Virus record (IMG/VR): IMGVR_UViG_3300036766_000988
Coordinates: 1 to 64,000 of that record
DNA: 64,000 bases
Direction: 5' to 3' (one strand)
The notes under the pieces were generated by a model, which saw only the letters and a list, made by a program, of their open reading frames with translations, had not been told where the DNA came from and made no database searches. Position 1 is the stretch's first letter. Every line of letters starts with the position of its first letter. The translations under genes and the position numbers were made by a program. Shown piece after piece: positions 3,869-44,873 of this stretch.

Positions 3869-6800
3869 CTACGAATCGATGAAGACTCGTACCATCGGGG
3901 CACCCGGCGGACGAACAATTCGGTACACATGATAGAGGCCATCGAAGAAGTCAAATGGGGTTCCCCCAACGACAACCTCGGAAGCGAGGTCGTAACAGAG
4001 AACGTACCGGATCCCCGTCGGAGCAGTCACGAACGCCAAAGCTAGCGTCATCCCAGGCGCCGAGAAGCCAAAGCGCACTTGGGAGTCCCCCATGCCGCCA
4101 GAGCCATCGGAGAGCACCTTGAGGCGGAATTTCACTTCAAGCCCAAGAGAGATGGCATCGGGAAGCGGGGTCGCGTTCCTGTAAATCGTCTTGGTGCCCG
4201 TCCCGTCCGTCCCGTAGGTCAAAATGCCTGCAAAAGCAGAGCGAGCAACGTGGGCCGGGTTATCCGCAGCAAAGACCCACGGCGTGCCCGCGGTAACATC
4301 GTTCTCGGGGAGCACAGAGCCATCGTACGTGAGACACACGTCCTTCTGGAAGTAGATCGGCCCGTAAGAGAGAGGATCCTCTTGATCGGAGAAAGGTGCG
4401 ATGAGCCCTATCTCTCCTGTGTCCCGCTCAATCACAGAGAGCTGGCTGTAAAGCACATCATCAGGAACGAGCAGCTTGACCTCGACTCCAGGCTCGTTGA
4501 GCTTGAAGCCGTTGTTGTTGAGTACCTGTGCAGGATTGTTGAGACCCCCAACGAAGATCTTGATCGGGGTGGGCTGTCGAACCTCGAACGTCTCGGTACT
4601 TGGAACAAGCGGCGTACCTTCGTTCAAAAGAGTGAACGCGACAAGATTCTGGTTCTTGAGAAAGTCGGGATCCTGATGCGGAGGAATGCCTGTAGAGGAC
4701 GACCAGAAATCCGTGTGGGCGTGCGGGATGTTCGTTGTCAAGTGCTCTGGCGACGCGATCACATTCCGCTGGTTCAGGACTTGGTGATGAGGAGCAATCC
4801 GCAATTCGGTTGGGGATCGGGTGACCCCAAAGCGAACGTAATCCCAGTACGTTTGGGAGAGATTCGTCGGATCGAAAGCACCCCAAAGAATACTTGGAAC
4901 CGTCCCTGCAATGATACGGGGAAGCCCTACTATACTTGGGGGTAGAGTCGAATTATCGTAGTCCACAACCAAGAGCGGCGCAGGATCGGCGTCTAGAAGG
5001 ACCGTGACGAAGCTTCCTGCTGGATCTTCCACGATTCGGTAACGATGTTGCTGCGTCCAGTCCGTTTCCTTGAGGATTCGGTAACTGATGCTGCTGGGCT
5101 GTTGAGGCCACAAGCCTGCGATGGTGAGGGTGTGGGCCGCGGGAGGAGCTGCGATTTCGTACGTGCCCTTGTTCGGTCCCGCATCGACCACCAGCAGGTC
5201 TCCAGCGACAACCCCTGCCGTGATGAAGTTCACGTTCCCATCCGCAAGGGCGTTGCCCACGATGAGAGCTTGGGTGCCTGTCGTCTTCGTCGGCAGATGG
5301 TAGCCCGTGAAGCTGTCGGGGTCGTAGCCCCGCCAGATGCCACAATAATGTCTTGTCGCCGACCCAACCCGCCACGTGTTGCAGTAGGTCCAGTCGACAT
5401 TCGAGATGGCTTGAGATCCTGGAATCGAAGAACCGAAGGAGACATACCCCACGGGGCTCGCAGGAGGGGTCGCGAAGCCTGCGTATGGTTCAACAGCGAT
5501 GAACACCCCATCGATGAAGAGAGACACCAGACCCGCACCCGAGGCGTAGACCAACCGATAGGTATGGGGCTGCCCGTCTCTCCACTCGAAGGGGAGAGTT
5601 GCCACAACCGTCACTACCCCAAAGGCATCAATGCCGAAAAGGACAACCGAACGAGTACCATTGTCCTTGAGGTAGAAACCCAGGGTCTTGGTTGAGTCAT
5701 AGACCTGCGCTACCGCGCCCGTAAAGCCCGTGACAACATCCGCCGTGTAGCTCGTTGGCTGAAGACGAGCCTCCAAGATGTAGTCGTTGAGAGAACTGAG
5801 AATACGTCCTGGAGAAAGAATCGGAGCGTTGTCATCGAAGATGTAGAGCAGCCCATCCGTCGCAGCCGTGTTCGTCACACGAAGCGTTCGACCGAACATC
5901 TGAGCTGTGGGGGTTCCGGCTGTGATCTCGATCCACGGGATGGGAAGACTCGTCGGAAGAGCGTCACCACCGTAGGAAATCTTGGGCGCCGCTTGGTCGG
6001 CCAGGAACGAAAACTGGACGAGCCGGTCTCCATCATCGATTATCGCCGTGATAGCGTTTGGCGTAACCCCGTGTGTCCACGTGCGAACCGCCACGTCGAT
6101 ATCGAGCACAACTTCGGCATCCGTCGCAAGAAGCGGTTCCAGCCGCAGGAAGCCTCGGAAATCTCCTCCCACATAGGTTGTCGAAGAAGCGACGGCGCTC
6201 GTCGAATCGAGCAAGAGGAAGTCACTGCTGAGGATCGTCTCCGTCCCGTGATACCCAATGGGCGTCCACGGGTTCTGAGCCACCTCTGGCGTGACGTTAC
6301 CCTCGTACGAAACGAAGATGCTTGGTGCTGTCTGTAGAGGGTTGAGGGGCAGAACGGTGTACCGCACGTAGTCCCAAATGGTCGTGCTCGTAGCCGTCCG
6401 CGAAAGATTCCCAAAGTAGGTACCCTGCAAGCTGTTGAACGGAGTGTCGAGTTCTTCGAGATACGGTAGCTCGTCTTGGGTGACGCGCATGTTCTCGACG
6501 ATCTCTCCGTTGAGGAAGAGCTTCAAGATCCCCTGGGGGTCTTGGTAAATTCGGAAGCTATTTCGGATTGTCCAGTCGAGCGCGATGGGGGCATTCGTTG
6601 GATTGTTGTTCGAGTCGAGACCCCCCGTCCAAGCGGTGATAAGAGATGGATCGTTGCCAAAGCCCTTTTTCAAGAACCCGATCTTGGCCACCCCTCCATC
6701 GAGGAGATACCCAACAACGACCGCTTTCTGGTCATCCGAATAACCGTACGCGACGCCCGTGAAAACGCCTTGAGTCATTGGGGTTGCGGTGATGATGTTC

Positions 6801-33758: not shown

Positions 33759-35504
33759 TCACGTCATCGACTCGATGACCTCCACCCAGCTTGAAGCCGA
33801 GCCCGAGTGGAAGGACTTCACGACCTCGAACACCTGATCGGAGAAGCCGCCGACATTCAGGATGTCGTTCCTCGAAGGAGCGGGCGACGTGGTGTTCGGC
33901 TGTACGTCGTTGCACACGAGCCGTGCATCCGAACGGCCCTTCTTGATGAGGTCCCACTGACGGAGGGTCTCGGTCCTCGACCCACCCCAGTTACCGTACC
34001 TCGGCGAATCCATCCACGACTCGTTGTCCGAGACGTACATGGCGAGCGCCGGGCGGATACCCATGGTGGTGATGGCCGCGAGTGCCGCCGAGCAGTTGGT
34101 GCCGCCACATGGCAGCGCCGTGAGCTTCTGCGCGTTCGTCATGATCGAATCACGCGGGTTGAGACGAACGTCCGTGAGGGCCTTCGACTCGAACGGGATG
34201 ATGACCGCGTGCGGGTTCACCCGCAGCATCGAAGCCGCGATGACGGCTGCAACGTCGATGCAACGAACCTTCGACGTGTGCTGCTCGACCCGGCCGGTCT
34301 TCGGGTTCATCTGCATGCCCGTGATGGGCGAGTGCATGGAGCCCGAGATGTCCGGCATGATGACCACGACGTCATCGACGGTCGGAACGTTCTTGGTCGC
34401 GATCTCCATCGCGTCCTGGAGAGCATTCGTGATCTCGCGCGGCATCTCCGCGTTCATGTTGAGGTAGGCGACCAAGAGCTGGTACGGGAGAGCCCGTGCC
34501 TTCGAGATCGACTGCGCATCGGCAAGCTTGGCCGCAACCGCCTTCACGACGTCGGCGCTCTTGAACGCCCCCTTCTTGTTGAAGAGGTTGAGCCGCTGAC
34601 GAAGCGACTGCCACGACTGGCGCAGAGCCAGCTCCTGCCACTGCTCGACGCTGAGCGGCAGACCTTCGAGCATCTCGAAAGGCACCTTCGGGGTCTCCCC
34701 CTGCGGCTCCTTCTTGAAGCGCTCGTAATCCGCCACGACCGACGGAATTGCATCGGACACTACGAAATCGTTGCCCTCGAACTTCCCGGCGGTCTTGTCG
34801 AGCAGATAGCCGAAGAGAGCCGCGCGTTCGCGGGTCATCGGGTGCGGGTGAACGAGCGACACGATGTCCCCAAGGGACGGATCGTTGCCGATCGACTGGA
34901 AAAACACCTGCTCGTCGGTCTTGGTGTCGAACCAGCTACGAATGAGCCGACGCGGCGCCGTACCCAGGGACTTACGGCCCGCTTCGCCCGAGCGGACGAT
35001 CTGGACGAAGTTCTTGAGCATCTTGCCGTTGTCGATCACACGCGGGAACACGGCCCACACGATCTCGTTGAGACGCTCGACCTCCTCATGAGCCGCAGCG
35101 ATCTGGGCTTCGAGCGACACCGGGACGTCACGCTTCTCCGTGCGGAGAGCCGCACGCTGCTGAAGCAGAATCTCCTCGACCTTGTGTGCCTCAGCCACAC
35201 GACCCGAGAGAGTCGCGACGAGGAACGCGGGCATGTCCTTGAGGAAGCCCTTCTCACGGCTGTAGAGCGCGAGCTTCCCGATGAACTCGGGGTCGCACTG
35301 AGTCGTCAGCTCCTTCACCTTCGTGAGCTGATCCTCGGCCTTCGCGTAGAAGGTGTTGTTGAAGCAACCCGTCGCAGCGAGCTGCGCGAGGGCTTCCTTC
35401 GCCTTGAGCGAGTACGCCAACCCGCCCGCCTCGTTCTTCGTGTCCGCAGCCGGAGACTTCGCGGAAACGCCCTTCGCCCCCCTGAAAAGGCTCTTCGATG
35501 CCAT
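33759..35504 (-). CDS. rsr: Ro60/Rsr TROVE + vWA RNA-binding protein
   Basis: NEAGGLAY, LAATGCFNNTFY, ALPYQLLVAY, MIDAS DISGSM, GGTNCS, VSDNESW, VGGFSDQVF; GGAGG SD before MASKS. Confidence 0.93.
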   Translation of the reverse strand: MASKSLFRGAKGVSAKSPAADTKNEAGGLAYSLKAKEALAQLAATGCFNNTFYAKAEDQLTKVKELTTQCDPEFIGKLALYSREKGFLKDMPAFLVATLSGRVAEAHKVEEILLQQRAALRTEKRDVPVSLEAQIAAAHEEVERLNEIVWAVFPRVIDNGKMLKNFVQIVRSGEAGRKSLGTAPRRLIRSWFDTKTDEQVFFQSIGNDPSLGDIVSLVHPHPMTRERAALFGYLLDKTAGKFEGNDFVVSDAIPSVVADYERFKKEPQGETPKVPFEMLEGLPLSVEQWQELALRQSWQSLRQRLNLFNKKGAFKSADVVKAVAAKLADAQSISKARALPYQLLVAYLNMNAEMPREITNALQDAMEIATKNVPTVDDVVVIMPDISGSMHSPITGMQMNPKTGRVEQHTSKVRCIDVAAVIAASMLRVNPHAVIIPFESKALTDVRLNPRDSIMTNAQKLTALPCGGTNCSAALAAITTMGIRPALAMYVSDNESWMDSPRYGNWGGSRTETLRQWDLIKKGRSDARLVCNDVQPNTTSPAPSRNDILNVGGFSDQVFEVVKSFHSGSASSWVEVIESMT

Positions 35505-35600
35505 GGTACCCTCCTGCATGCGCCCCGGCCGAAGCCGAACCGCCAAAGTGCCCGCCTTCATGCGACCCGCTATGGGCCGCCAAACTGGCGAGCAGGGGTT

Positions 35601-36080
35601 CTATACACCAGGCTCGTTGAGACCGTCGAGATATTTTTCAACGACCCTCAAGGCCAGGGGGTCGTCCGCGTAGAGATACCGCTTCACCTTCCGGTACTTC
35701 TGGGGCGGACTTGGTACGGGGACCTTCGGCGGTTTCACATGCTTGACGGGCTTGGGCTTCTTGGGCGGCAAGACATGCTTCGGGGGGATCGGGGGATGAA
35801 GAGGAGCGGGCGGCGGTTCGCGAACGATCTCTGGTTTGTGAGGCTTTTTGGGCTTCCGCGGAAGATGAGGCTGCCCCGGATGACGATGCGGAGCTGGCTT
35901 TCCCTCCGTGTTGAGCTTCGAGGGCGGGATTTTCTGGTAAACCCCAGCCTCCTCCTGCAACGTCTCGGGAAGAACGTAGACGATCCGCTCCTTGTCCGTG
36001 TTGTAGACAGGGATCATGTTCTTCGGTCGCGTGTACTTCCCTTCCAGGAAGCGTGCGATGACACGATGAACGAGATCCAT
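35601..36080 (-). CDS. Pro/Lys-rich protein with RVIARFL tags
   Basis: N-terminal LVHRVIARFL, C-terminal LALRVVEKYL. Confidence 0.6.
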   Translation of the reverse strand: MDLVHRVIARFLEGKYTRPKNMIPVYNTDKERIVYVLPETLQEEAGVYQKIPPSKLNTEGKPAPHRHPGQPHLPRKPKKPHKPEIVREPPPAPLHPPIPPKHVLPPKKPKPVKHVKPPKVPVPSPPQKYRKVKRYLYADDPLALRVVEKYLDGLNEPGV

Positions 36081-36103: not shown

Positions 36104-36856
36104 TCAGAAGTCCTCATCAGCAAGAAGCCGCGTCCAGGCATCTCGGGGATCCTTGGGCTTCTCACAAGGTCTCCAACGCGTCGAGAAGGTCACAACATTC
36201 TCATGGAGAACTTTCTCGGTTCGCCAAACGGCCACTTGCACTCGAAGCATCGTGAGTTCTGTGATGCACGCAACGACTTGGCCCCCTTCCGCTTCAGGGT
36301 GCTGCACCCACTGACCGATCTGTAGCCAATCCGGGCGCACAAACGGGGGCACCTCGGAACCGTTCGCATCCGTGCCGGAGTCGTAGATCGGCAGCGCCCC
36401 CTCGGGAAGTTGCTCGACGAGGAACGTGCGACGACCGACCGACTGGTAGTCCATCCGCTGCCGTATAGGCGCGACCATCGCCTGAGCAAGCCGCTGACGG
36501 CCTTGCTGCGACTCTAGAGCCTGCCGGATGATCTGCTCTTGTGTGATCTGAGGAAGAACGTCACGATTGAGGTTCCCTAGATCAAGCAACCCATGGGGGT
36601 TCGTGAGCCGCTCAAACCCAAGGATAGGGCGCGTCGTGAGCGGCGTTTCAACACGACCATACTGGTCGTGGATCCTACGTAGAGCAGGTGAATCCGTCTC
36701 TAGGGACTCGTTCCGCCAATGAACAATGAGGCTCGGGACCGGCCTACGTAGGACGTCAATAGACGCAACGTCGCCAGATTCCGCGAACAGCGCCCGATGG
36801 CTGTTCATCAAGATCCGACCGTCGAGGTCGTTCGGATAGAAAAGTGTCCAGGGCAC
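36104..36856 (-). CDS. Hypothetical protein with a capsid-like segment and C-terminal AWTRLLADE tag
   Basis: GRQRLAQAMVAPIRQRMDYQSVGRRTFLVEQLPEGALPIYD segment. Confidence 0.65.
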   Translation of the reverse strand: MPWTLFYPNDLDGRILMNSHRALFAESGDVASIDVLRRPVPSLIVHWRNESLETDSPALRRIHDQYGRVETPLTTRPILGFERLTNPHGLLDLGNLNRDVLPQITQEQIIRQALESQQGRQRLAQAMVAPIRQRMDYQSVGRRTFLVEQLPEGALPIYDSGTDANGSEVPPFVRPDWLQIGQWVQHPEAEGGQVVACITELTMLRVQVAVWRTEKVLHENVVTFSTRWRPCEKPKDPRDAWTRLLADEDF

Positions 36857-36907: not shown

Positions 36908-36981
36908 TGGAGTGTCGTACGGGGATCGAACCCGTGTACCCGGATTTAGAGTTCGGTGCCTGACCTCTAGGCTAACGACAC
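36908..36981 (-). tRNA. Amber-suppressor tRNA (anticodon CUA)
   Basis: Cloverleaf: acceptor GUGUCGU/ACGACAC, D-arm GCCU-AGAGGUC-AGGC, anticodon arm CCGAA-CUCUAAA-UCCGG (one A-C mismatch), T-arm ACGGG-UUCGAUC-CCCGU, U73-CCA. Confidence 0.9.
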
Positions 36982-36985
36982 GAGA

Positions 36986-37285
36986 TTACCGACCGATTGC
37001 CACAAGAGCTTCATCCACAGCCGTGTCGGCCAGGATAAAGCTCCGCATGGCCCGAACCCACCCAGCATTCCGAGCGAACTGAATGAACGCCGAAATTTCC
37101 TCGGGCCCCACGGTGGAACAACGCCGTTCGGCAAATTCCACCGTGAGGATGTGACCAGGGCTGGTCTCATCCTCGATGAGGACTCGAAGTCGAGGTCCGA
37201 TACTAGGCTTCAAAGCCCGAACCCTGAAGCGGTACGGAACTCCGTTGACCTTGATCTGTCGGGTGCCCCTTCGAGGCATCGTCAT
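36986..37285 (-). CDS. Hypothetical protein
   Basis: MPRRGTRQIKVNGVPYRFRV...GPEEISAFIQFARNAGW; ATGA overlap. Confidence 0.65.
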   Translation of the reverse strand: MTMPRRGTRQIKVNGVPYRFRVRALKPSIGPRLRVLIEDETSPGHILTVEFAERRCSTVGPEEISAFIQFARNAGWVRAMRSFILADTAVDEALVAIGR

Positions 37286-37680
37286 GCAGCTTCAGTACAC
37301 CGAAGAGCGAGCGGAAGACTACTGACAAGACGACGAGCTGCGGGTTCAAGAGCAAACGCCGTCAACTCGTTCCCCCGGTCGGGCTCATGGAACGGCGCCA
37401 CCGAGAAGCCCCGGTCGACTGCCCTGTTGAAGAGGCCCCAAAGAGCCTCCTCGTTGGGCACGGCAAGCATGGCGAGGTAGTTCGAGCGCGTGTACCACGC
37501 CTGATCGATTTCCGGGTGATGAGCCACGAACTCCCGCAAGGCGTGCGCCGTCTGGATGGCTTGCACCCCCGGAGGGAGATCTTCCCGCGTCACGAGGAAA
37601 AGTTTGTCGGTCGGGCCCACAACAAGACTCCGTGAACCCAGATGAGCACCCATGTTCTCCATGTCACGTCGTCCCCCCAT
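37282..37680 (-). CDS. Peptidyl-tRNA hydrolase, Pth2-like
   Basis: KLFLVTREDLPPGVQAIQTAHA...L.VPNEEAL...FHEPDRGNELTAFAL...LPLAL; start uncertain. Confidence 0.8.
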   Translation of the reverse strand: MGGRRDMENMGAHLGSRSLVVGPTDKLFLVTREDLPPGVQAIQTAHALREFVAHHPEIDQAWYTRSNYLAMLAVPNEEALWGLFNRAVDRGFSVAPFHEPDRGNELTAFALEPAARRLVSSLPLALRCTEAA

Positions 37681-38260
37681 CGGAGTCCTCGTCGTACTCG
37701 TTATCGTCTTCCGCCATAACCCTGCGTTCGTCGGCGCACTTGCGGAAGTGCATTGAAACCGCCCCGATGATGGTTTCGGGAAGACCCGCCGTCTTCAGGC
37801 TCTCCTTCCAACCCACCTCGGAACGATCCCCTGCGATCCAGTGCTTTTCCCCGATGATGAACTTGGGCGGATCACTGTAGACGTTCCCGCCAGGCGTCTC
37901 CAAGTAGGGCCACAACTCCAGCGGGCTGTCATTGCAACAACCGCAGTTATGCCGAAGATCGAAGCGGTCGACTTTCGTGTTCACGGACTTCGAATAGTAG
38001 GCCACCTTGTTCCAGCGGCCCGTAAACTGCCGAAGATCCGGGTACTCCTTGAGAAGGGACTCGATCTGGTCCGCTTGGGCAAGCGCCGCTGCGGCTTCCT
38101 TGCGAAGCTTCTCGATTGCGCGTGGAACGGCAAGTCTAGCATCCTCCTCGACCTTCTTTTGCCATTCCTCAGCGGCCTTGCGACGCGACGCTTCCGCAGC
38201 CGCTTGCTGCTCGGGGGTGGGCTCGGATGTCAGGGCCTTCAGAAGCTTCTTGCTGAGCAT
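37664..38260 (-). CDS. Hypothetical protein (HNCGCC motif)
   Basis: MLSKKLLK start coupled to the upstream stop. Confidence 0.65.
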   Translation of the reverse strand: MLSKKLLKALTSEPTPEQQAAAEASRRKAAEEWQKKVEEDARLAVPRAIEKLRKEAAAALAQADQIESLLKEYPDLRQFTGRWNKVAYYSKSVNTKVDRFDLRHNCGCCNDSPLELWPYLETPGGNVYSDPPKFIIGEKHWIAGDRSEVGWKESLKTAGLPETIIGAVSMHFRKCADERRVMAEDDNEYDEDSDGGTT

Positions 38261-39459
38261 CACGAGAGCACCTGCTTCGCATATGCGAAGGCCTCGGCCA
38301 TTGCAGCCGCCGAATGCTCGAACCACTTATCCTCGACGTGCTTGCCATCCCGATAGATGACGAGCTTGATCGGGCCGGTCTCACAGGCCCATTCGAGGTC
38401 AATGGTGCTCTTGGCCTTGTAGTGGATCCGGCGGCACCACCGCTTCTCCCGACCGGTGAAGTGCGGACACCAGTTGTCGTACGTGACCCCGAGGCCCGAA
38501 TGATCTTCGGGCGACAATGCAGGATCCTTCACCAGCTCGATGTACGCCAGGTAAAGCGGATCGGTGGCCTTGAAGTCCTCCTTCCACTGCTCGTACTTGC
38601 GATTGCCTTCCTCTCGGTCGGCCCGGACCTTCTTCTCCTGCTCGGAAACCCACTCCTCGACGAGCACGAGTTTCATACCCTCGCGGCGGAAGGTCTTGGT
38701 GGCGGCATCCACCCTCGGCTTCTGCTTACAGTGATCGGGGCAGTCGTCGTGATCGCACTCCGCCCGTTCCGTCTGGTAGCACTTGATCGTCCCATCGGGC
38801 TCGATGGTGGGGTACTTGCTGTCCTCTTCGACCCCTCCCTCAGCCTCGATCTCCGGCCAACCCTCCATGGGGTTGGAGAAGTCGAAGAAACGGAACTCGT
38901 ACGGGCAGGCCCAGTGGCAGCCACAGACCACCAACATCTGGGATCCCGCATCGAACGTGGAGTCTGCCCAGCAGAAGCCGAAACCTTCCTCCGCCTCTTC
39001 GGGCAGGAAATCCCGACGCTTGCCGGTATCCAGCTCGATGACCGTCTGCCCTTGATAGTCCTCGCCGCAGACGAGGTAATCATGACCGTTCGGATGCCCT
39101 TCGACGAACGTGTACGGGAACGCAGAGTAGTTCCTGTTCACGACCGCGATGGGCGCATCCGAGCCGAGCTTGAAGACCTTCCCCTGGATGTAAGACCAGC
39201 ATCCAGGCTTCGTCTCGTAGCTCGCGATGACAAGCTTGTACTGCCCGCTCGAACTCAGCTTCTCCCAACGATCTTTCGTGCTCTCGTTCGCGGGAACGAA
39301 AACAGCGTCCTTCTCGGCCCGATAGTACGCCTTGAGCAGACCCGGCTGAACGAGGGCCTTGAGACGCTTTCGCTCCTCGTAAGCACCCGGCTCGTGGCTA
39401 TCGAAGTCGAGGTAGGCCTGCAACTCGGGGGTCATCCCCTTGAAGGTCGTGTTCATCAC
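38260..39459 (-). CDS. Hypothetical protein (~400 aa)
   Basis: GTGA overlap with the upstream gene; GCHWACPY motif. Confidence 0.7.
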   Translation of the reverse strand: MMNTTFKGMTPELQAYLDFDSHEPGAYEERKRLKALVQPGLLKAYYRAEKDAVFVPANESTKDRWEKLSSSGQYKLVIASYETKPGCWSYIQGKVFKLGSDAPIAVVNRNYSAFPYTFVEGHPNGHDYLVCGEDYQGQTVIELDTGKRRDFLPEEAEEGFGFCWADSTFDAGSQMLVVCGCHWACPYEFRFFDFSNPMEGWPEIEAEGGVEEDSKYPTIEPDGTIKCYQTERAECDHDDCPDHCKQKPRVDAATKTFRREGMKLVLVEEWVSEQEKKVRADREEGNRKYEQWKEDFKATDPLYLAYIELVKDPALSPEDHSGLGVTYDNWCPHFTGREKRWCRRIHYKAKSTIDLEWACETGPIKLVIYRDGKHVEDKWFEHSAAAMAEAFAYAKQVLS

Positions 39460-40382: not shown

Positions 40383-40928
40383 TCAGCCGCTCAGGAACCG
40401 GGCGGTGACCCGAAGCGCTGTAGTATCCTCGGGACTGCACGCGATCTGCATCGGAGTTGTGCTGACGTGATGGATCTTGAACTCAACGCTCTTCGTCTTG
40501 AGAAACGTGTCGAAAGCCCCGACATGTTCAGCACGGTCTTCCCACATCTCAACCTGCTTTGTTGTCTCTGACAAGAGAGCAGCGATCGTCTTGAGCTTGA
40601 AAGGGAGCGTGTCATCCCCGTTAGAAAAATGGGTCTCATCGAACCGGAGGCCCACCTCAGCCAACAGAGCTTGGACCCGAGTCCGCAGCTTCGGAGGCCT
40701 GCCTGTAATCATGATCGCATAGACACTAGGATTGGAAATGGACTTGCGTGCCGCTGCCACCGTAGAAGCCACCCACCACTCAGCGTCAGGCTTTTCTGGC
40801 ACGCATGGAGGCGAGAGACTCTCAAGCCGACCCCACCAGCCCTGCGTCCACCACTCAGGTTTCGCAGGCGAGCGAAAAAGCGTCCCATCGAAGTCGAAGA
40901 CATGCAGGGTCTCGATAGTCACGGGCAT
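40383..40928 (-). CDS. HAD phosphatase, Swiss-Army-Knife RNA-repair type
   Basis: LHVFDFDGTLFRSP, MITGR, FK, MWEDR..H; C-terminal ALRVTARFL. Confidence 0.8.
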   Translation of the reverse strand: MPVTIETLHVFDFDGTLFRSPAKPEWWTQGWWGRLESLSPPCVPEKPDAEWWVASTVAAARKSISNPSVYAIMITGRPPKLRTRVQALLAEVGLRFDETHFSNGDDTLPFKLKTIAALLSETTKQVEMWEDRAEHVGAFDTFLKTKSVEFKIHHVSTTPMQIACSPEDTTALRVTARFLSG

Positions 40929-43586: not shown

Positions 43587-44873
43587 TCACTCGTAGTCGC
43601 GACGGCCGACATAGCTCGTCTTTTGAGGCACACCCTTGTTCGACAGGTCTTGGAAGCGGTACGTGATGACAGTACCGATCGCGGGCGGGTTGCGACGATC
43701 CTTGTCCGAAAGCCCCGTCCCGAGGTTGAACTCCACCCCAGCGTTGAGCGACACCTTGTCGTTGAAGAACCGCTGGGACTTGCATTCGAGAGCGCCCACG
43801 CGACCCTTGTGCTTACCCTTCCCCGCCGTGTACCCCGTGACGTAGGCCTCGGCATCGTAGAAGGTCTTGACCTTCACGAGGGTGTCACTTCGAGCCCGTA
43901 CGTAGAGCGAGTTCGCCTTGCGGAGCATGACGCCTTCACCACCGAGCTTCTCGACCTCATCGAGGTACATGCGAAGATGCGGGATGCCACGGCAGATCTG
44001 ATGCTCGACGAGCTTGACCTCGTTATACTTCCGCGCGACCGCCTTCAACATGTCGTACCGCTTGGAGAACGGCTCCTGCACCATCGGAAGGTCGAAGGCT
44101 CGGAACTGGATCTGCTGCCAGTAGGTTCCCTGATCATGACGGCGAACGAAACCGCTCGTCTCCTGGAAGCGCTTGCGGCCAATCCAGAACTCCCCGTCGA
44201 GGTGCAGATCCTTCGGGAAGTGCTGCAAGTACCACTCGGGCACGCGGAAGATGTTGTCGAGCCGCGAACGGAAAACCCGGCCGTCCCAGTAGGCCCGCAC
44301 CCCATCGAGCTTCTCGCTCATGAGATAGCCAGTCGGATCGAGCACCCCGTCCCACGACTCCGCAAGCAGAACCGCGAACTTCGACTCGCCTTCCTCTTCG
44401 TTCTCGGTCACGAGAACGGTCTCCACGGGAGGCGGAGGATCATCCCCGAACGGATCGGCGCCGAGCAGACGAGTCCACGCCGTAGCGGGCGCTGCTGGCT
44501 TCGGGGGTGGCACGGGCTTCGACCGCACGGTGGCCAGCTTCGACGGCACGAGATAGCGTGCAGCTCGACCGTTCTGCGTCACCTGCCCACCAAGAAGAGA
44601 CGTGGGGAGAGGAGCCCTTCGTTGGGGAGTGGGGGTCGACGGCGCATTGTAGGACGCCGCAGCCTGGACCGACGTACGAACACGGACATCCTCGGCGGCC
44701 GAGCCACGGAACGCCCGCAGGTGCTTGCATGTGCGCTGATCGATGCCCAGCGACTGATTCCGCCAAGCAGGGCACGAACAACTGTAAACCCCACCCGTGT
44801 TGTAAAGCTCGTAGCTCCGTCCCGAGCTGGAACGGACCGTACGACGCTCACCATCGCGAAGATTCTCAGGCAT
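43587..44873 (-). CDS. lig: ATP-dependent DNA ligase with an N-terminal SWIM zinc finger
   Basis: SEKLDGVRAYW, LDGEFW, EGVMLR, LVKVK, OB-fold GTGLSD; YSCSCPAW...CKHL. Confidence 0.92.
   Translation of the reverse strand: MPENLRDGERRTVRSSSGRSYELYNTGGVYSCSCPAWRNQSLGIDQRTCKHLRAFRGSAAEDVRVRTSVQAAASYNAPSTPTPQRRAPLPTSLLGGQVTQNGRAARYLVPSKLATVRSKPVPPPKPAAPATAWTRLLGADPFGDDPPPPVETVLVTENEEEGESKFAVLLAESWDGVLDPTGYLMSEKLDGVRAYWDGRVFRSRLDNIFRVPEWYLQHFPKDLHLDGEFWIGRKRFQETSGFVRRHDQGTYWQQIQFRAFDLPMVQEPFSKRYDMLKAVARKYNEVKLVEHQICRGIPHLRMYLDEVEKLGGEGVMLRKANSLYVRARSDTLVKVKTFYDAEAYVTGYTAGKGKHKGRVGALECKSQRFFNDKVSLNAGVEFNLGTGLSDKDRRNPPAIGTVITYRFQDLSNKGVPQKTSYVGRRDYE

Follow-up and report, generated by a model that had tools for sequence, protein, structure and literature searches.

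The first 64 kb of the IMG/VR virus record IMGVR_UViG_3300036766_000988 (this stretch is the window; the whole record, that of the source phage, is called G000) carries on its minus strand, at positions 36908–36981, a transfer RNA (tRNA) gene whose CUA anticodon reads the stop codon UAG. It is rather probable, in our view, that selection has maintained the gene as a true nonsense suppressor in a huge phage with many tRNAs and the standard genetic code, and we propose that its product brings about partial readthrough of UAG. TAG is a true terminator, and not a rare one, both in the G000 lineage and in a complete relative (G001). In uncultured huge phages, as in cultured mycobacteriophages of the Bxz1 type, a CUA or UUA tRNA is usually found immediately downstream of a gene for a Pth2-type peptidyl-tRNA hydrolase (PTH2), and in the huge phages it often also adjoins the gene for a propeller protein of 399 amino acids (aa).

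G000 is a fragment of a huge phage, a linear contig of 252,183 bp with a G+C (GC) content of 59.5% and a CheckV completeness of 53%. It holds 54 tRNA genes and a transfer-messenger RNA (tmRNA) gene, with the tag ANDNSTALPALLAA, all on the minus strand; 53 of the tRNAs and the tmRNA form the main array (G000 62869–88477), and the CUA tRNA stands alone, 26 kb off. PHROG matches between 160 and 220 kb include helicases, an NAD ligase, ribonucleotide reductase, UvsX, RtcB, and GroEL; neither a terminase gene nor a clear capsid gene was seen in the contig, which represents about half of the genome. Among GenBank phages there was no nucleotide or protein match to a 14-kb stretch, to an 838-aa open reading frame (ORF), or to the 399-aa protein. 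Because our gene caller is crude and half of G000 is missing, we fetched a complete relative, G001 (IMGVR_UViG_3300028654_000001; 512,571 bp, terminal repeats, GC 49%). Its layout is that of G000, with a tmRNA and an array of 41 tRNAs (457935–479593) and a solitary CUA tRNA 19 kb away.

The meaning of TAG was assessed with our own codon-usage gene caller, trained on the genome itself, which reaches a coverage of about 75%. Its 338 gene calls in G000 end in TGA (181), TAG (118, about 35%), or TAA (39). With TAG scored as a sense codon of neutral weight, the coverage falls to 0.724 (0.755 with TAG as a stop) and the summed coding score to 9870 (from 10859), so that code 11 is preferred over a code 15-type reading. 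In G001, where 153 of 622 genes (25%) end in TAG, code 11 is likewise preferred, and the junction candidates number 2 for TAG versus 12 for TGA. Pairs of same-frame ORFs with coding signal on both sides are no more commonly split by TAG than by TGA in G000, and in the few TAG junctions that we examined each downstream ORF has its own ATG or GTG within 12 codons. When the phage proteins were aligned to the fetched relatives with tblastn, only 8 TAG codons, scattered singly, appeared in 87,409 aligned residues. Conserved genes that end in TAG stop where their family profiles stop (a 761-aa exonuclease V homolog, for example, reaches position 733 of the 743 of phrog_4412), and the large, probably structural ORFs at 3.8–25 kb are unbroken by TAG. 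Genes with RF-1/PCRF domains (PF00472, PF03462), which would represent a phage RF2, were found neither in the incomplete G000 nor in the complete G001, and a search for GlnRS or GluRS (PF00749) gave no match in the 252-kb contig, about half of the genome. None of the features by which code 15 phages are recognized (in-frame TAG in conserved or late genes, a rise in coding density with TAG as sense, rarity of TAG as a terminator, and, as an optional trait, a phage RF2 or dedicated aminoacyl-tRNA synthetase) was seen in G000. An earlier note on the window had proposed these comparisons of coding density and searches for RF2 or a synthetase, and had stated that TAG is still a stop at which many genes end, that long genes are unbroken by it, and that there has been no wholesale recoding; the gene calls, the lack of an in-frame TAG excess, and the lack of any coding gain bear all of this out. 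In a replication and repair block (G000 190000–220000), only 5 of 30 genes end in TAG, compared to about 40% elsewhere, a scarcity that may reflect expression level or timing.

ARAGORN calls two tRNAs in the window, one of them at 36908–36981 on the minus strand with the anticodon CTA, and Rfam RF00005 matches 36911–36981 on the same strand over the whole model (positions 1–71 of 71) with 56.8 bits (gathering score 29, E 1e-9). The sequence is that of a 74-nt class I tRNA with a 7-bp acceptor stem, a 4-bp D stem, a 5-bp T stem, a 7-nt D loop holding GG (G18G19), a 5-bp anticodon stem with a single A30–C40 mismatch, a 4-nt variable loop, the T loop UUCGAUC, the discriminator U73, and an encoded CCA. 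The anticodon loop, CUCUAAA, is a normal 7-nt loop that contains U33 and places A37-A38 after the anticodon, as would be expected of an amber suppressor, and apart from the one mismatch the full cloverleaf, G18G19, T loop, and CCA are those of a canonical elongator tRNA. The minimum free energy fold of the tRNA alone is no better than that of shuffled sequences (z = −0.87), as is common among tRNAs; the covariance-model score carries more weight. ARAGORN's label, Pyl, derives from the anticodon alone. The anticodon is the sole feature shared with tRNA-Pyl, an identity that is ruled out by the GG-containing D loop, the TψC-type T loop, the 5-bp anticodon stem, and the 4-nt variable loop: tRNA-Pyl has a small D loop without GG, no TψC motif, a 6-bp anticodon stem, and a 3-nt variable loop, and, unlike it, the window tRNA has two bases linking the acceptor stem to the D stem. 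A pylS gene was not found in the incomplete 252-kb contig, where TIGR02367 gives only a 14-bit match to a HisRS-like fragment. The earlier note, which gave no strand and had asked for the ARAGORN check, was correct in every structural detail (the CUCUAAA loop, D-loop GG, T loop, U73, A–C mismatch, and non-Pyl type), and on these features the gene encodes a canonical, non-Pyl tRNA of the amber-suppressor type.

The nearest relatives of the neighboring 399-aa protein (63–67% identical) keep the gene order and have the same tRNA body in the same place, with either CUA or UUA as the anticodon (Table 1). In the fetched relative loci L015 and L059 (L numbers denote such loci throughout), whose neighboring protein is 64–66% identical, the order is 400-aa gene, 155-aa gene, PTH2, 99-aa gene, tRNA; the D and T arms are the same as in the window, and the anticodon stem of these UUA tRNAs is fully paired. 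Relative to the window tRNA, the orthologs have changed on both sides of pairs 2:71 and 6:67. In an alignment of 12 class I cassette tRNAs, pairing holds in 96% of cells, and double (compensatory) changes are seen at 14 of 21 pairs, figures that are partly built in because the sequences were chosen by a tRNA finder; in the same alignment U33, U35, A36, A37, and A38 are invariant and position 34 is only C or U. The real evidence for selection lies in the syntenic orthologs and this invariant stop-reading anticodon. A36-A37-A38 is kept in 19 of 26 cassette suppressors, and CUA or UUA tRNAs occupy the same cassette in relatives whose neighboring proteins are 45–66% identical and whose GC content is 49–60%. 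Within G000, the best identity of the CUA tRNA to any of the other 53 tRNAs is 68%, and it is no recent copy. These comparisons indicate that the tRNA is not decaying and that its stop-reading anticodon is maintained by selection. Pattern searches of IMG/VR contributed little: the exact anticodon-arm pattern has 2 matches, neither of them a tRNA, and a looser loop-plus-T-arm pattern yielded 16 CUA tRNAs of unrelated phages, which were useless for orthology.

The association with PTH2 was counted in sets of loci that overlap (IMG/VR and Joint Genome Institute (JGI) contigs) and that span related lineages without de-replication. In 80 metagenome loci with the 399-aa gene, the 41 tRNAs found include 23 with CUA, 3 with UUA, 3 with CUA in an 8-nt loop, and 1 with UCA, and in the IMG/VR loci fetched with this family a CUA or UUA tRNA is very often the sole tRNA within 6 kb. 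Where phage loci extend at least 3.5 kb on both flanks, a suppressor is present in 15 of 39 and other tRNAs only in 3 of 39; next to full-length cellular homologs (8 from Sorangium, the rest from metagenome-assembled genomes of Myxococcales) a suppressor is present in 0 of 11. Searching with the PTH2 profile alone led to 29 IMG/VR loci, 18 of which have a CUA or UUA tRNA within 3 kb, often 10–200 nt downstream; stop-reading tRNAs make up 21 of the 56 tRNAs found there, against a background of 1 in 54 in G000 and 1 in 42 in G001. The tRNA is usually directly behind PTH2 (3 nt away in L062, 12–13 nt in L113 and L114, 35 nt in L045), and the same pair is present in the published huge-phage records LR756500, LR756501 (735 kb), and LR745208. 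Many loci have two suppressors, one of class I and one with a long variable arm, and the tRNA bodies of the cassette are not all homologous, their common element being the stop-reading anticodon. We found no paper that ties suppressor tRNAs to a Pth2 gene in a literature of which our coverage is incomplete, and the link seems to be previously unreported.

Some tRNA-like genes beside homologs of the 399-aa protein have anticodon loops of 6, 8, or 9 nt (L064:3058–3220 and 4449–4629; L065:1367–1528 and 2779–2957; L066:4677–4749; L076:7193–7266); ARAGORN reads their anticodons as 'ca', 'gcca', 'tcta', and, in a 9-nt loop, GUG, and judging by these loops they could hardly decode in the ordinary way. 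Right behind Pth2 in four loci (L241:3322, L255:3805, L256:3804, L040:7410–7485) stands a short-arm tRNA with the loop CUUAAAG that is called Leu(UAA); its anticodon stem pairs poorly, and it may be a shifted UUA reader.

The earlier note left the charged amino acid unclear, and the sequence does not reveal it. Nearest-neighbor typing against 341 phage tRNAs is indecisive, with top scores for His, Lys, and Leu of 0.71–0.73; since there is no clear isotype and the best match within the genome is so distant, we do not name the amino acid. The short variable loop should rule out the bacterial Ser, Leu, and Tyr types, and the G3–C70 pair should rule out Ala. In E. coli amber suppressors, U35 favors GlnRS or LysRS, and owing to U35 our best guess is charging with Gln or Lys; the D arm and anticodon stem look Gln/Glu-like. 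The CUA tRNA agrees with the phage tRNA-His (G000 81793–81867), which has A73 and an encoded G at −1, in 6 of the 7 acceptor pairs and 4 of the 5 T-stem pairs and differs in the remainder, a likeness that could stem from tRNA-gene recombination or from a common identity element. A 191-aa ORF within the tRNA array (G000 83836–84411, minus strand; L270:1288–1863) is a truncated HisRS (tRNA-synt_2b 8e-10; PDB HisRS 6e-16) that keeps the motif 2 and motif 3 regions and has no anticodon-binding domain. It may be a remnant or a mini-synthetase; it has no homolog in the complete G001 or in any fetched locus, and therefore it is not a conserved partner of the CUA tRNA and was dropped as a candidate charging enzyme.

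In the reading that we favor, the tRNA would be released by RNase P and 3' processing from a transcript shared with the Pth2 hydrolase gene and would receive its amino acid from a host synthetase tolerant of CUA as the anticodon. The charged tRNA would then compete with RF1 at UAG, so that part of the ribosomes read through in infected cells, and the phage Pth2 and tmRNA would handle the peptidyl-tRNA and non-stop ribosomes made by this readthrough. Alternatively, tRNA, Pth2, and tmRNA may work together as a set that sustains ribosome movement when termination or tRNAs come under attack in the infected cell. The gain to the phage might be the buffering of amber mutations in a very large genome, the maintenance of ribosome flow when UAG termination is limiting or attacked, or harm to the gene expression of the host or a competitor; the tRNA is not a tool to change the meaning of TAG in the phage's own genes. 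Suppressor-driven readthrough is known to create non-stop complexes that are resolved by trans-translation (Ueda 2002 as cited in PMC3985003), and the presence of a phage tmRNA fits our explanation in this respect.

Several points weigh against a selected, partially efficient suppressor. The earlier note had suggested regulated readthrough as one possible role; same-frame scans of G000, a contig of about half the genome, found no readthrough target gene and no coding-like extension after TAG. Backup stops are not enriched behind TAG-ended genes, the median distance to the next non-TAG stop being 34 codons compared to 44 after TGA-ended genes, so that efficient suppression would seem costly: about one third of the phage proteins would gain a median of 34 residues. 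The discriminator varies among the orthologs (U73 in the window, A73 in L015 and L060), and the identity of the tRNA is therefore not obviously conserved; the A30–C40 mismatch may weaken the window copy, and the nearest CUA ortholog, L060, also has a stem mismatch. The association counts are not fully independent, since some contigs are in both collections, and the adjacency to PTH2 could persist through the tiny spacer alone, without joint function. The absence of targets and backup stops points to a low efficiency of suppression or to a role that does not involve extended proteins. One candidate for a readthrough fusion was dropped: the TAG of a 159-aa Pro/Lys-rich ORF (35601–36080, minus strand) is in frame with the Ro60 gene (33759–35561, minus strand), with 13 stop-free codons between them, but this arrangement is absent from L014 and L016 and is therefore probably due to chance.

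A bolder reading, which we regard as quite unlikely, is that the tRNA and the hydrolase form a two-part stand-in for RF1 at UAG and UAA. The CUA and UUA tRNAs, which together cover the codons of RF1, would recognize the stop and accept the peptide, and the co-expressed hydrolase would free it, so that UAG would end genes even when host RF1 is scarce, inhibited, or attacked by a toxin directed at stop codons. Such a mechanism would account for the frequent TAG terminators and the absence of selected backup stops, for the near absence of UGA readers in the cassette, and for a tRNA that remains only tens of bases from the hydrolase gene even in very distantly related phages. The inserted amino acid would seem to be irrelevant to it, since the position is taken by unrelated bodies of both class I and class II.

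The other explanations differ in whether the tRNA decodes at all and in what TAG means to the phage. One of them, raised in the earlier note as an early stage of recoding, is that TAG specifies an amino acid in some late genes, structural or lysis ones, of the missing half or that the lineage is heading toward code 15. The contig is only about 53% complete, without a terminase or clear capsid gene, and in recoded phages the early genes and the suppressor gene are still in the standard code (10.1101/2021.08.26.457843). Recoded phages (code 15 crAss-like, Lak, and others) further resemble G000 in expressing a phage tRNA(CUA) from standard-code genes, with charging presumed to be by a host synthetase (10.1101/2021.08.26.457843, PMC9523058), but their late genes contain in-frame TAG, their GC content is low, they end few genes in TAG, and some of them have RF2; G000 shows none of this. 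In recoded gut phages, a suppressor in a standard-code relative has been read as a step to recoding that sets out from low GC and rare TAG or TGA stops (10.1101/2021.08.26.457843); frequent TAG and a GC content of 49–60% are the opposite of this starting point, and the model does not fit the G000 lineage. We judge incipient or partial recoding to be very unlikely for the further reasons that the complete G001 has the same solitary CUA tRNA together with a preference for code 11, 153 TAG-ended genes, and fewer junction candidates for TAG than for TGA, that no gene with an RF-1 domain was found in G001 or in the incomplete G000, that the large ORFs at 3.8–25 kb are intact, and that cultured Bixzunavirus phages with a PTH–tRNA(CUA) pair are annotated with the standard code. 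The stop-reading tRNAs have been kept across deep divergence, TAG ends 35% of genes in G000 and 25% in G001, and the suppressor in a standard-code genome would appear to be a long-lived stable state and not a transition.

Bacterial Ro60 partners, the Y RNAs, mimic tRNA, and the window tRNA sits in a string of RNA repair and quality-control genes that includes a Ro60-vWA gene. It could accordingly be an RNA that does not decode: a decoy or substrate, a partner of Pth2, the propeller protein, or Ro60, or a bait for a host anticodon nuclease or tRNA-modifying toxin. The odd-loop tRNA-like genes beside 399-aa homologs, which could hardly decode, and the occurrence of very different bodies (class I and class II) in the same place are in keeping with such a role, which we nevertheless hold to be unlikely. 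What the unrelated bodies have in common is solely a stop-reading anticodon flanked by U33 and A37-A38, as required for decoding; the acceptor end is of the standard kind and has CCA; and an RNA that diverts a nuclease from real tRNAs should rather imitate a sense anticodon. A YrlA-type Y RNA, in which the 5' and 3' ends form the Ro60-binding stem and the tRNA-like module has no decoding anticodon arm, does not agree with the normal, unpermuted tRNA topology, and no Rfam Y-RNA match was found at E up to 5 in 33–39 kb of the window, the surroundings of Ro60 included. Finally, a sense tRNA (for example for Gln, Glu, or Lys, which are one base away at position 36) might have mutated to CUA by accident and be tolerated as a decaying pseudo-tRNA. 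Its A30–C40 mismatch, its U73, which the orthologs do not share, its position apart from the main array, and its single-sequence fold would be understandable on this account. The recurrence of CUA and UUA orthologs and analogs at the cassette across deep divergence with compensatory stem changes, the covariance score, and the low identity to the other tRNAs of G000 make it highly improbable.

Suppressor tRNAs in standard-code jumbo phages are of a kind already published. Xanthomonas phage XacN1 has two suppressors and the standard code, and an in-silico search for TAG readthrough found nothing (PMC5852040); Ralstonia phage RsoM2USA has one suppressor tRNA (PMC8504454), and Bacillus phage G has a UUA tRNA (PMC12484599). 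Like G000, these phages are large and tRNA-rich, use TAG as a common stop, and carry a solitary or paired stop-reading tRNA without an identifiable target, and G000 falls in with them and with the Bixzunavirus phages as a standard-code phage with an orphan suppressor. They have no detectable similarity to G000, and the PTH2 cassette is not described in the papers on them (PMC5852040, PMC8504454, PMC12484599); in XacN1 the suppressors are in the tRNA array of the terminal repeat and the hydrolase gene is elsewhere, whereas in G000 the tRNA is behind PTH2. The closest parallel to the cassette is in the Bixzunavirus (cluster C, Bxz1-like) mycobacteriophages, which have a homologous Pth2-type gene (39–44% identity) with a CUA tRNA about 250 nt downstream; in phage IkeLoa these are the consecutive genes 151 ('peptidyl tRNA hydrolase') and 152 ('tRNA-Pyl(cta)'). 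These cultured phages share with G000 a tRNA array with tmRNA and a standard-code annotation. They differ in their actinobacterial hosts, in their genomes of about 155 kb, in that the pair lies within the main tRNA array whereas the G000 tRNA stands apart, and in the CUA tRNA, whose anticodon loop looks irregular and which older records call tRNA-Arg. The laboratory suppressors of E. coli are mutant cellular alleles with known charging (supE and supB from tRNA-Gln, supF from tRNA-Tyr, supD from tRNA-Ser). They are one anticodon change away from a sense tRNA and have CUA and UUA versions of one body, as do the window and L015 tRNAs, and the class II bodies of some cassette tRNAs resemble their Ser or Tyr types; the G000 tRNA, unlike these mutant alleles, is a fixed and conserved phage gene.

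Table 1. The CUA tRNA gene, its syntenic orthologs, and the genes around it (window coordinates unless a locus is named).
Feature	Position	Strand	Anticodon	Evidence
tRNA gene (reads UAG)	36908..36981	-	CUA	ARAGORN; Rfam RF00005; sequence
Syntenic ortholog tRNA	L060:1676-1751		CUA	
Syntenic ortholog tRNA	L015:2732-2805 and L059:3712-3785		UUA	
99-aa ORF	36986..37285	-		ORF list; 99-aa gene at same place in L015; tblastn relatives in 6 loci
Pth2-type peptidyl-tRNA hydrolase homolog (PTH2)	37282..37680	-		PF01981; phrog_1866; profile versus PDB
199-220-aa ORF between 399-aa gene and PTH2	37664..38326	-		ORF list; own gene call; relatives in 22 loci
Conserved 399-aa protein P0001	38260..39459	-		674 relatives; AlphaFold2 model
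161-250-aa ORF, 51 nt downstream of tRNA	36104..36856	-		ORF list; own gene call; partial PHROG match
Ro60/TROVE-vWA homolog	33759..35561	-		Pfam PF25045 1.3e-9; PF05731
HAD_SAK_1 phosphatase domain of 'Swiss Army Knife' RNA-repair proteins	40383..40928	-		PF10307 2e-14; neighbor also in L014
ATP-dependent ligase (adenylation + OB)	43587..44873	-		PF14743 4e-21; PF01068 2.5e-10; neighbor in L014, L016

The 399-aa gene, the 199-aa ORF, PTH2, the 99-aa ORF, and the tRNA form a same-strand and mostly overlapping string (Table 1), and no promoter-like or minus-strand terminator-like site was found near the cassette, which looks like one transcription unit. The 99-aa ORF begins in an ATGA overlap with the stop of PTH2 and ends with a TAA that precedes the first tRNA base by 4 nt. 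The Pfam match of PTH2 is right at the cut-off (E 1e-4), but a profile of 17 homologs matches archaeal Pth2 (1wn2) in the PDB at E 3e-8 and also human Bit1. The 199–220-aa ORF overlaps both of its neighbors and has no match in Pfam or PHROG. The relatives of P0001, 50–66% identical, are from huge-phage contigs and Sorangium genomes. Its model (predicted local distance difference test score 89.9) has a partial beta-propeller (residues 54–271), a helical hairpin, and a C-terminal beta domain, for which Foldseek against the PDB, the ESM Atlas, and a wide VIA-align search gave only generic beta-propeller matches; an Atlas feature search gave weak leads to Tsi1/DUF4652 immunity-like propellers, with scores below 0.9. 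Full-length P0001 homologs (55–57% identical) occur in Sorangium chromosomes of 13–16 Mb (L136–L142), and Paenibacillus, Deinococcales, Planctomycetota, and others have proteins homologous to the N-terminal domain only; no cellular copy has PTH2 or a suppressor tRNA alongside.

Around the cassette, the 161–250-aa ORF has a partial match to a PHROG head-protein family (residues 105–164), and the same-strand string also encodes a PARP-like protein (Pfam), which together with the Ro60-vWA, HAD_SAK_1, and ligase genes makes this a neighborhood of RNA repair and quality control. The Ro60 relatives in huge phages (L001–L011, 41–46% identical) are mostly inside tRNA arrays, in mid-array in L002, L005–L007, and L011. 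Among tRNAs, ARAGORN finds no tRNA-Tyr in G000 or G001 and no tRNA-His in G001; the Ro60-linked relatives L006, L007, L010, and L011 do carry tRNA-Tyr. Inside the tRNA array of G000, a 356-aa ORF (84622–85692; L270:2074–3144, minus strand) has an SfiI-type restriction endonuclease domain (Pfam 4.6e-16). At the other end of the window, a run of very large ORFs (1856, 838, 756, 586, 670, and 1059 aa at 3869–25127) gave only one marginal PHROG match at a cut-off of 0.001 (the 670-aa ORF, E 7e-4), and these are possibly structural or tail proteins of an undescribed lineage.

Several earlier reports describe orphan suppressor tRNAs in phages without stop-codon recoding, and none explains them. For the G000 lineage, the comparative result speaks against their being on the way to recoding; the suppressor itself is of a known kind, and the new lead is the Pth2 cassette, which leads to a concrete hypothesis about termination, ribosome rescue, or counter-defense. 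The same pair occurs in cultured, genetically tractable mycobacteriophages, and the hypothesis is therefore open to experimental test. Should the pair prove to act on termination, it would represent a new viral takeover of the last step of translation, and suppressor tRNAs suited to high-GC hosts could then be drawn from nature.

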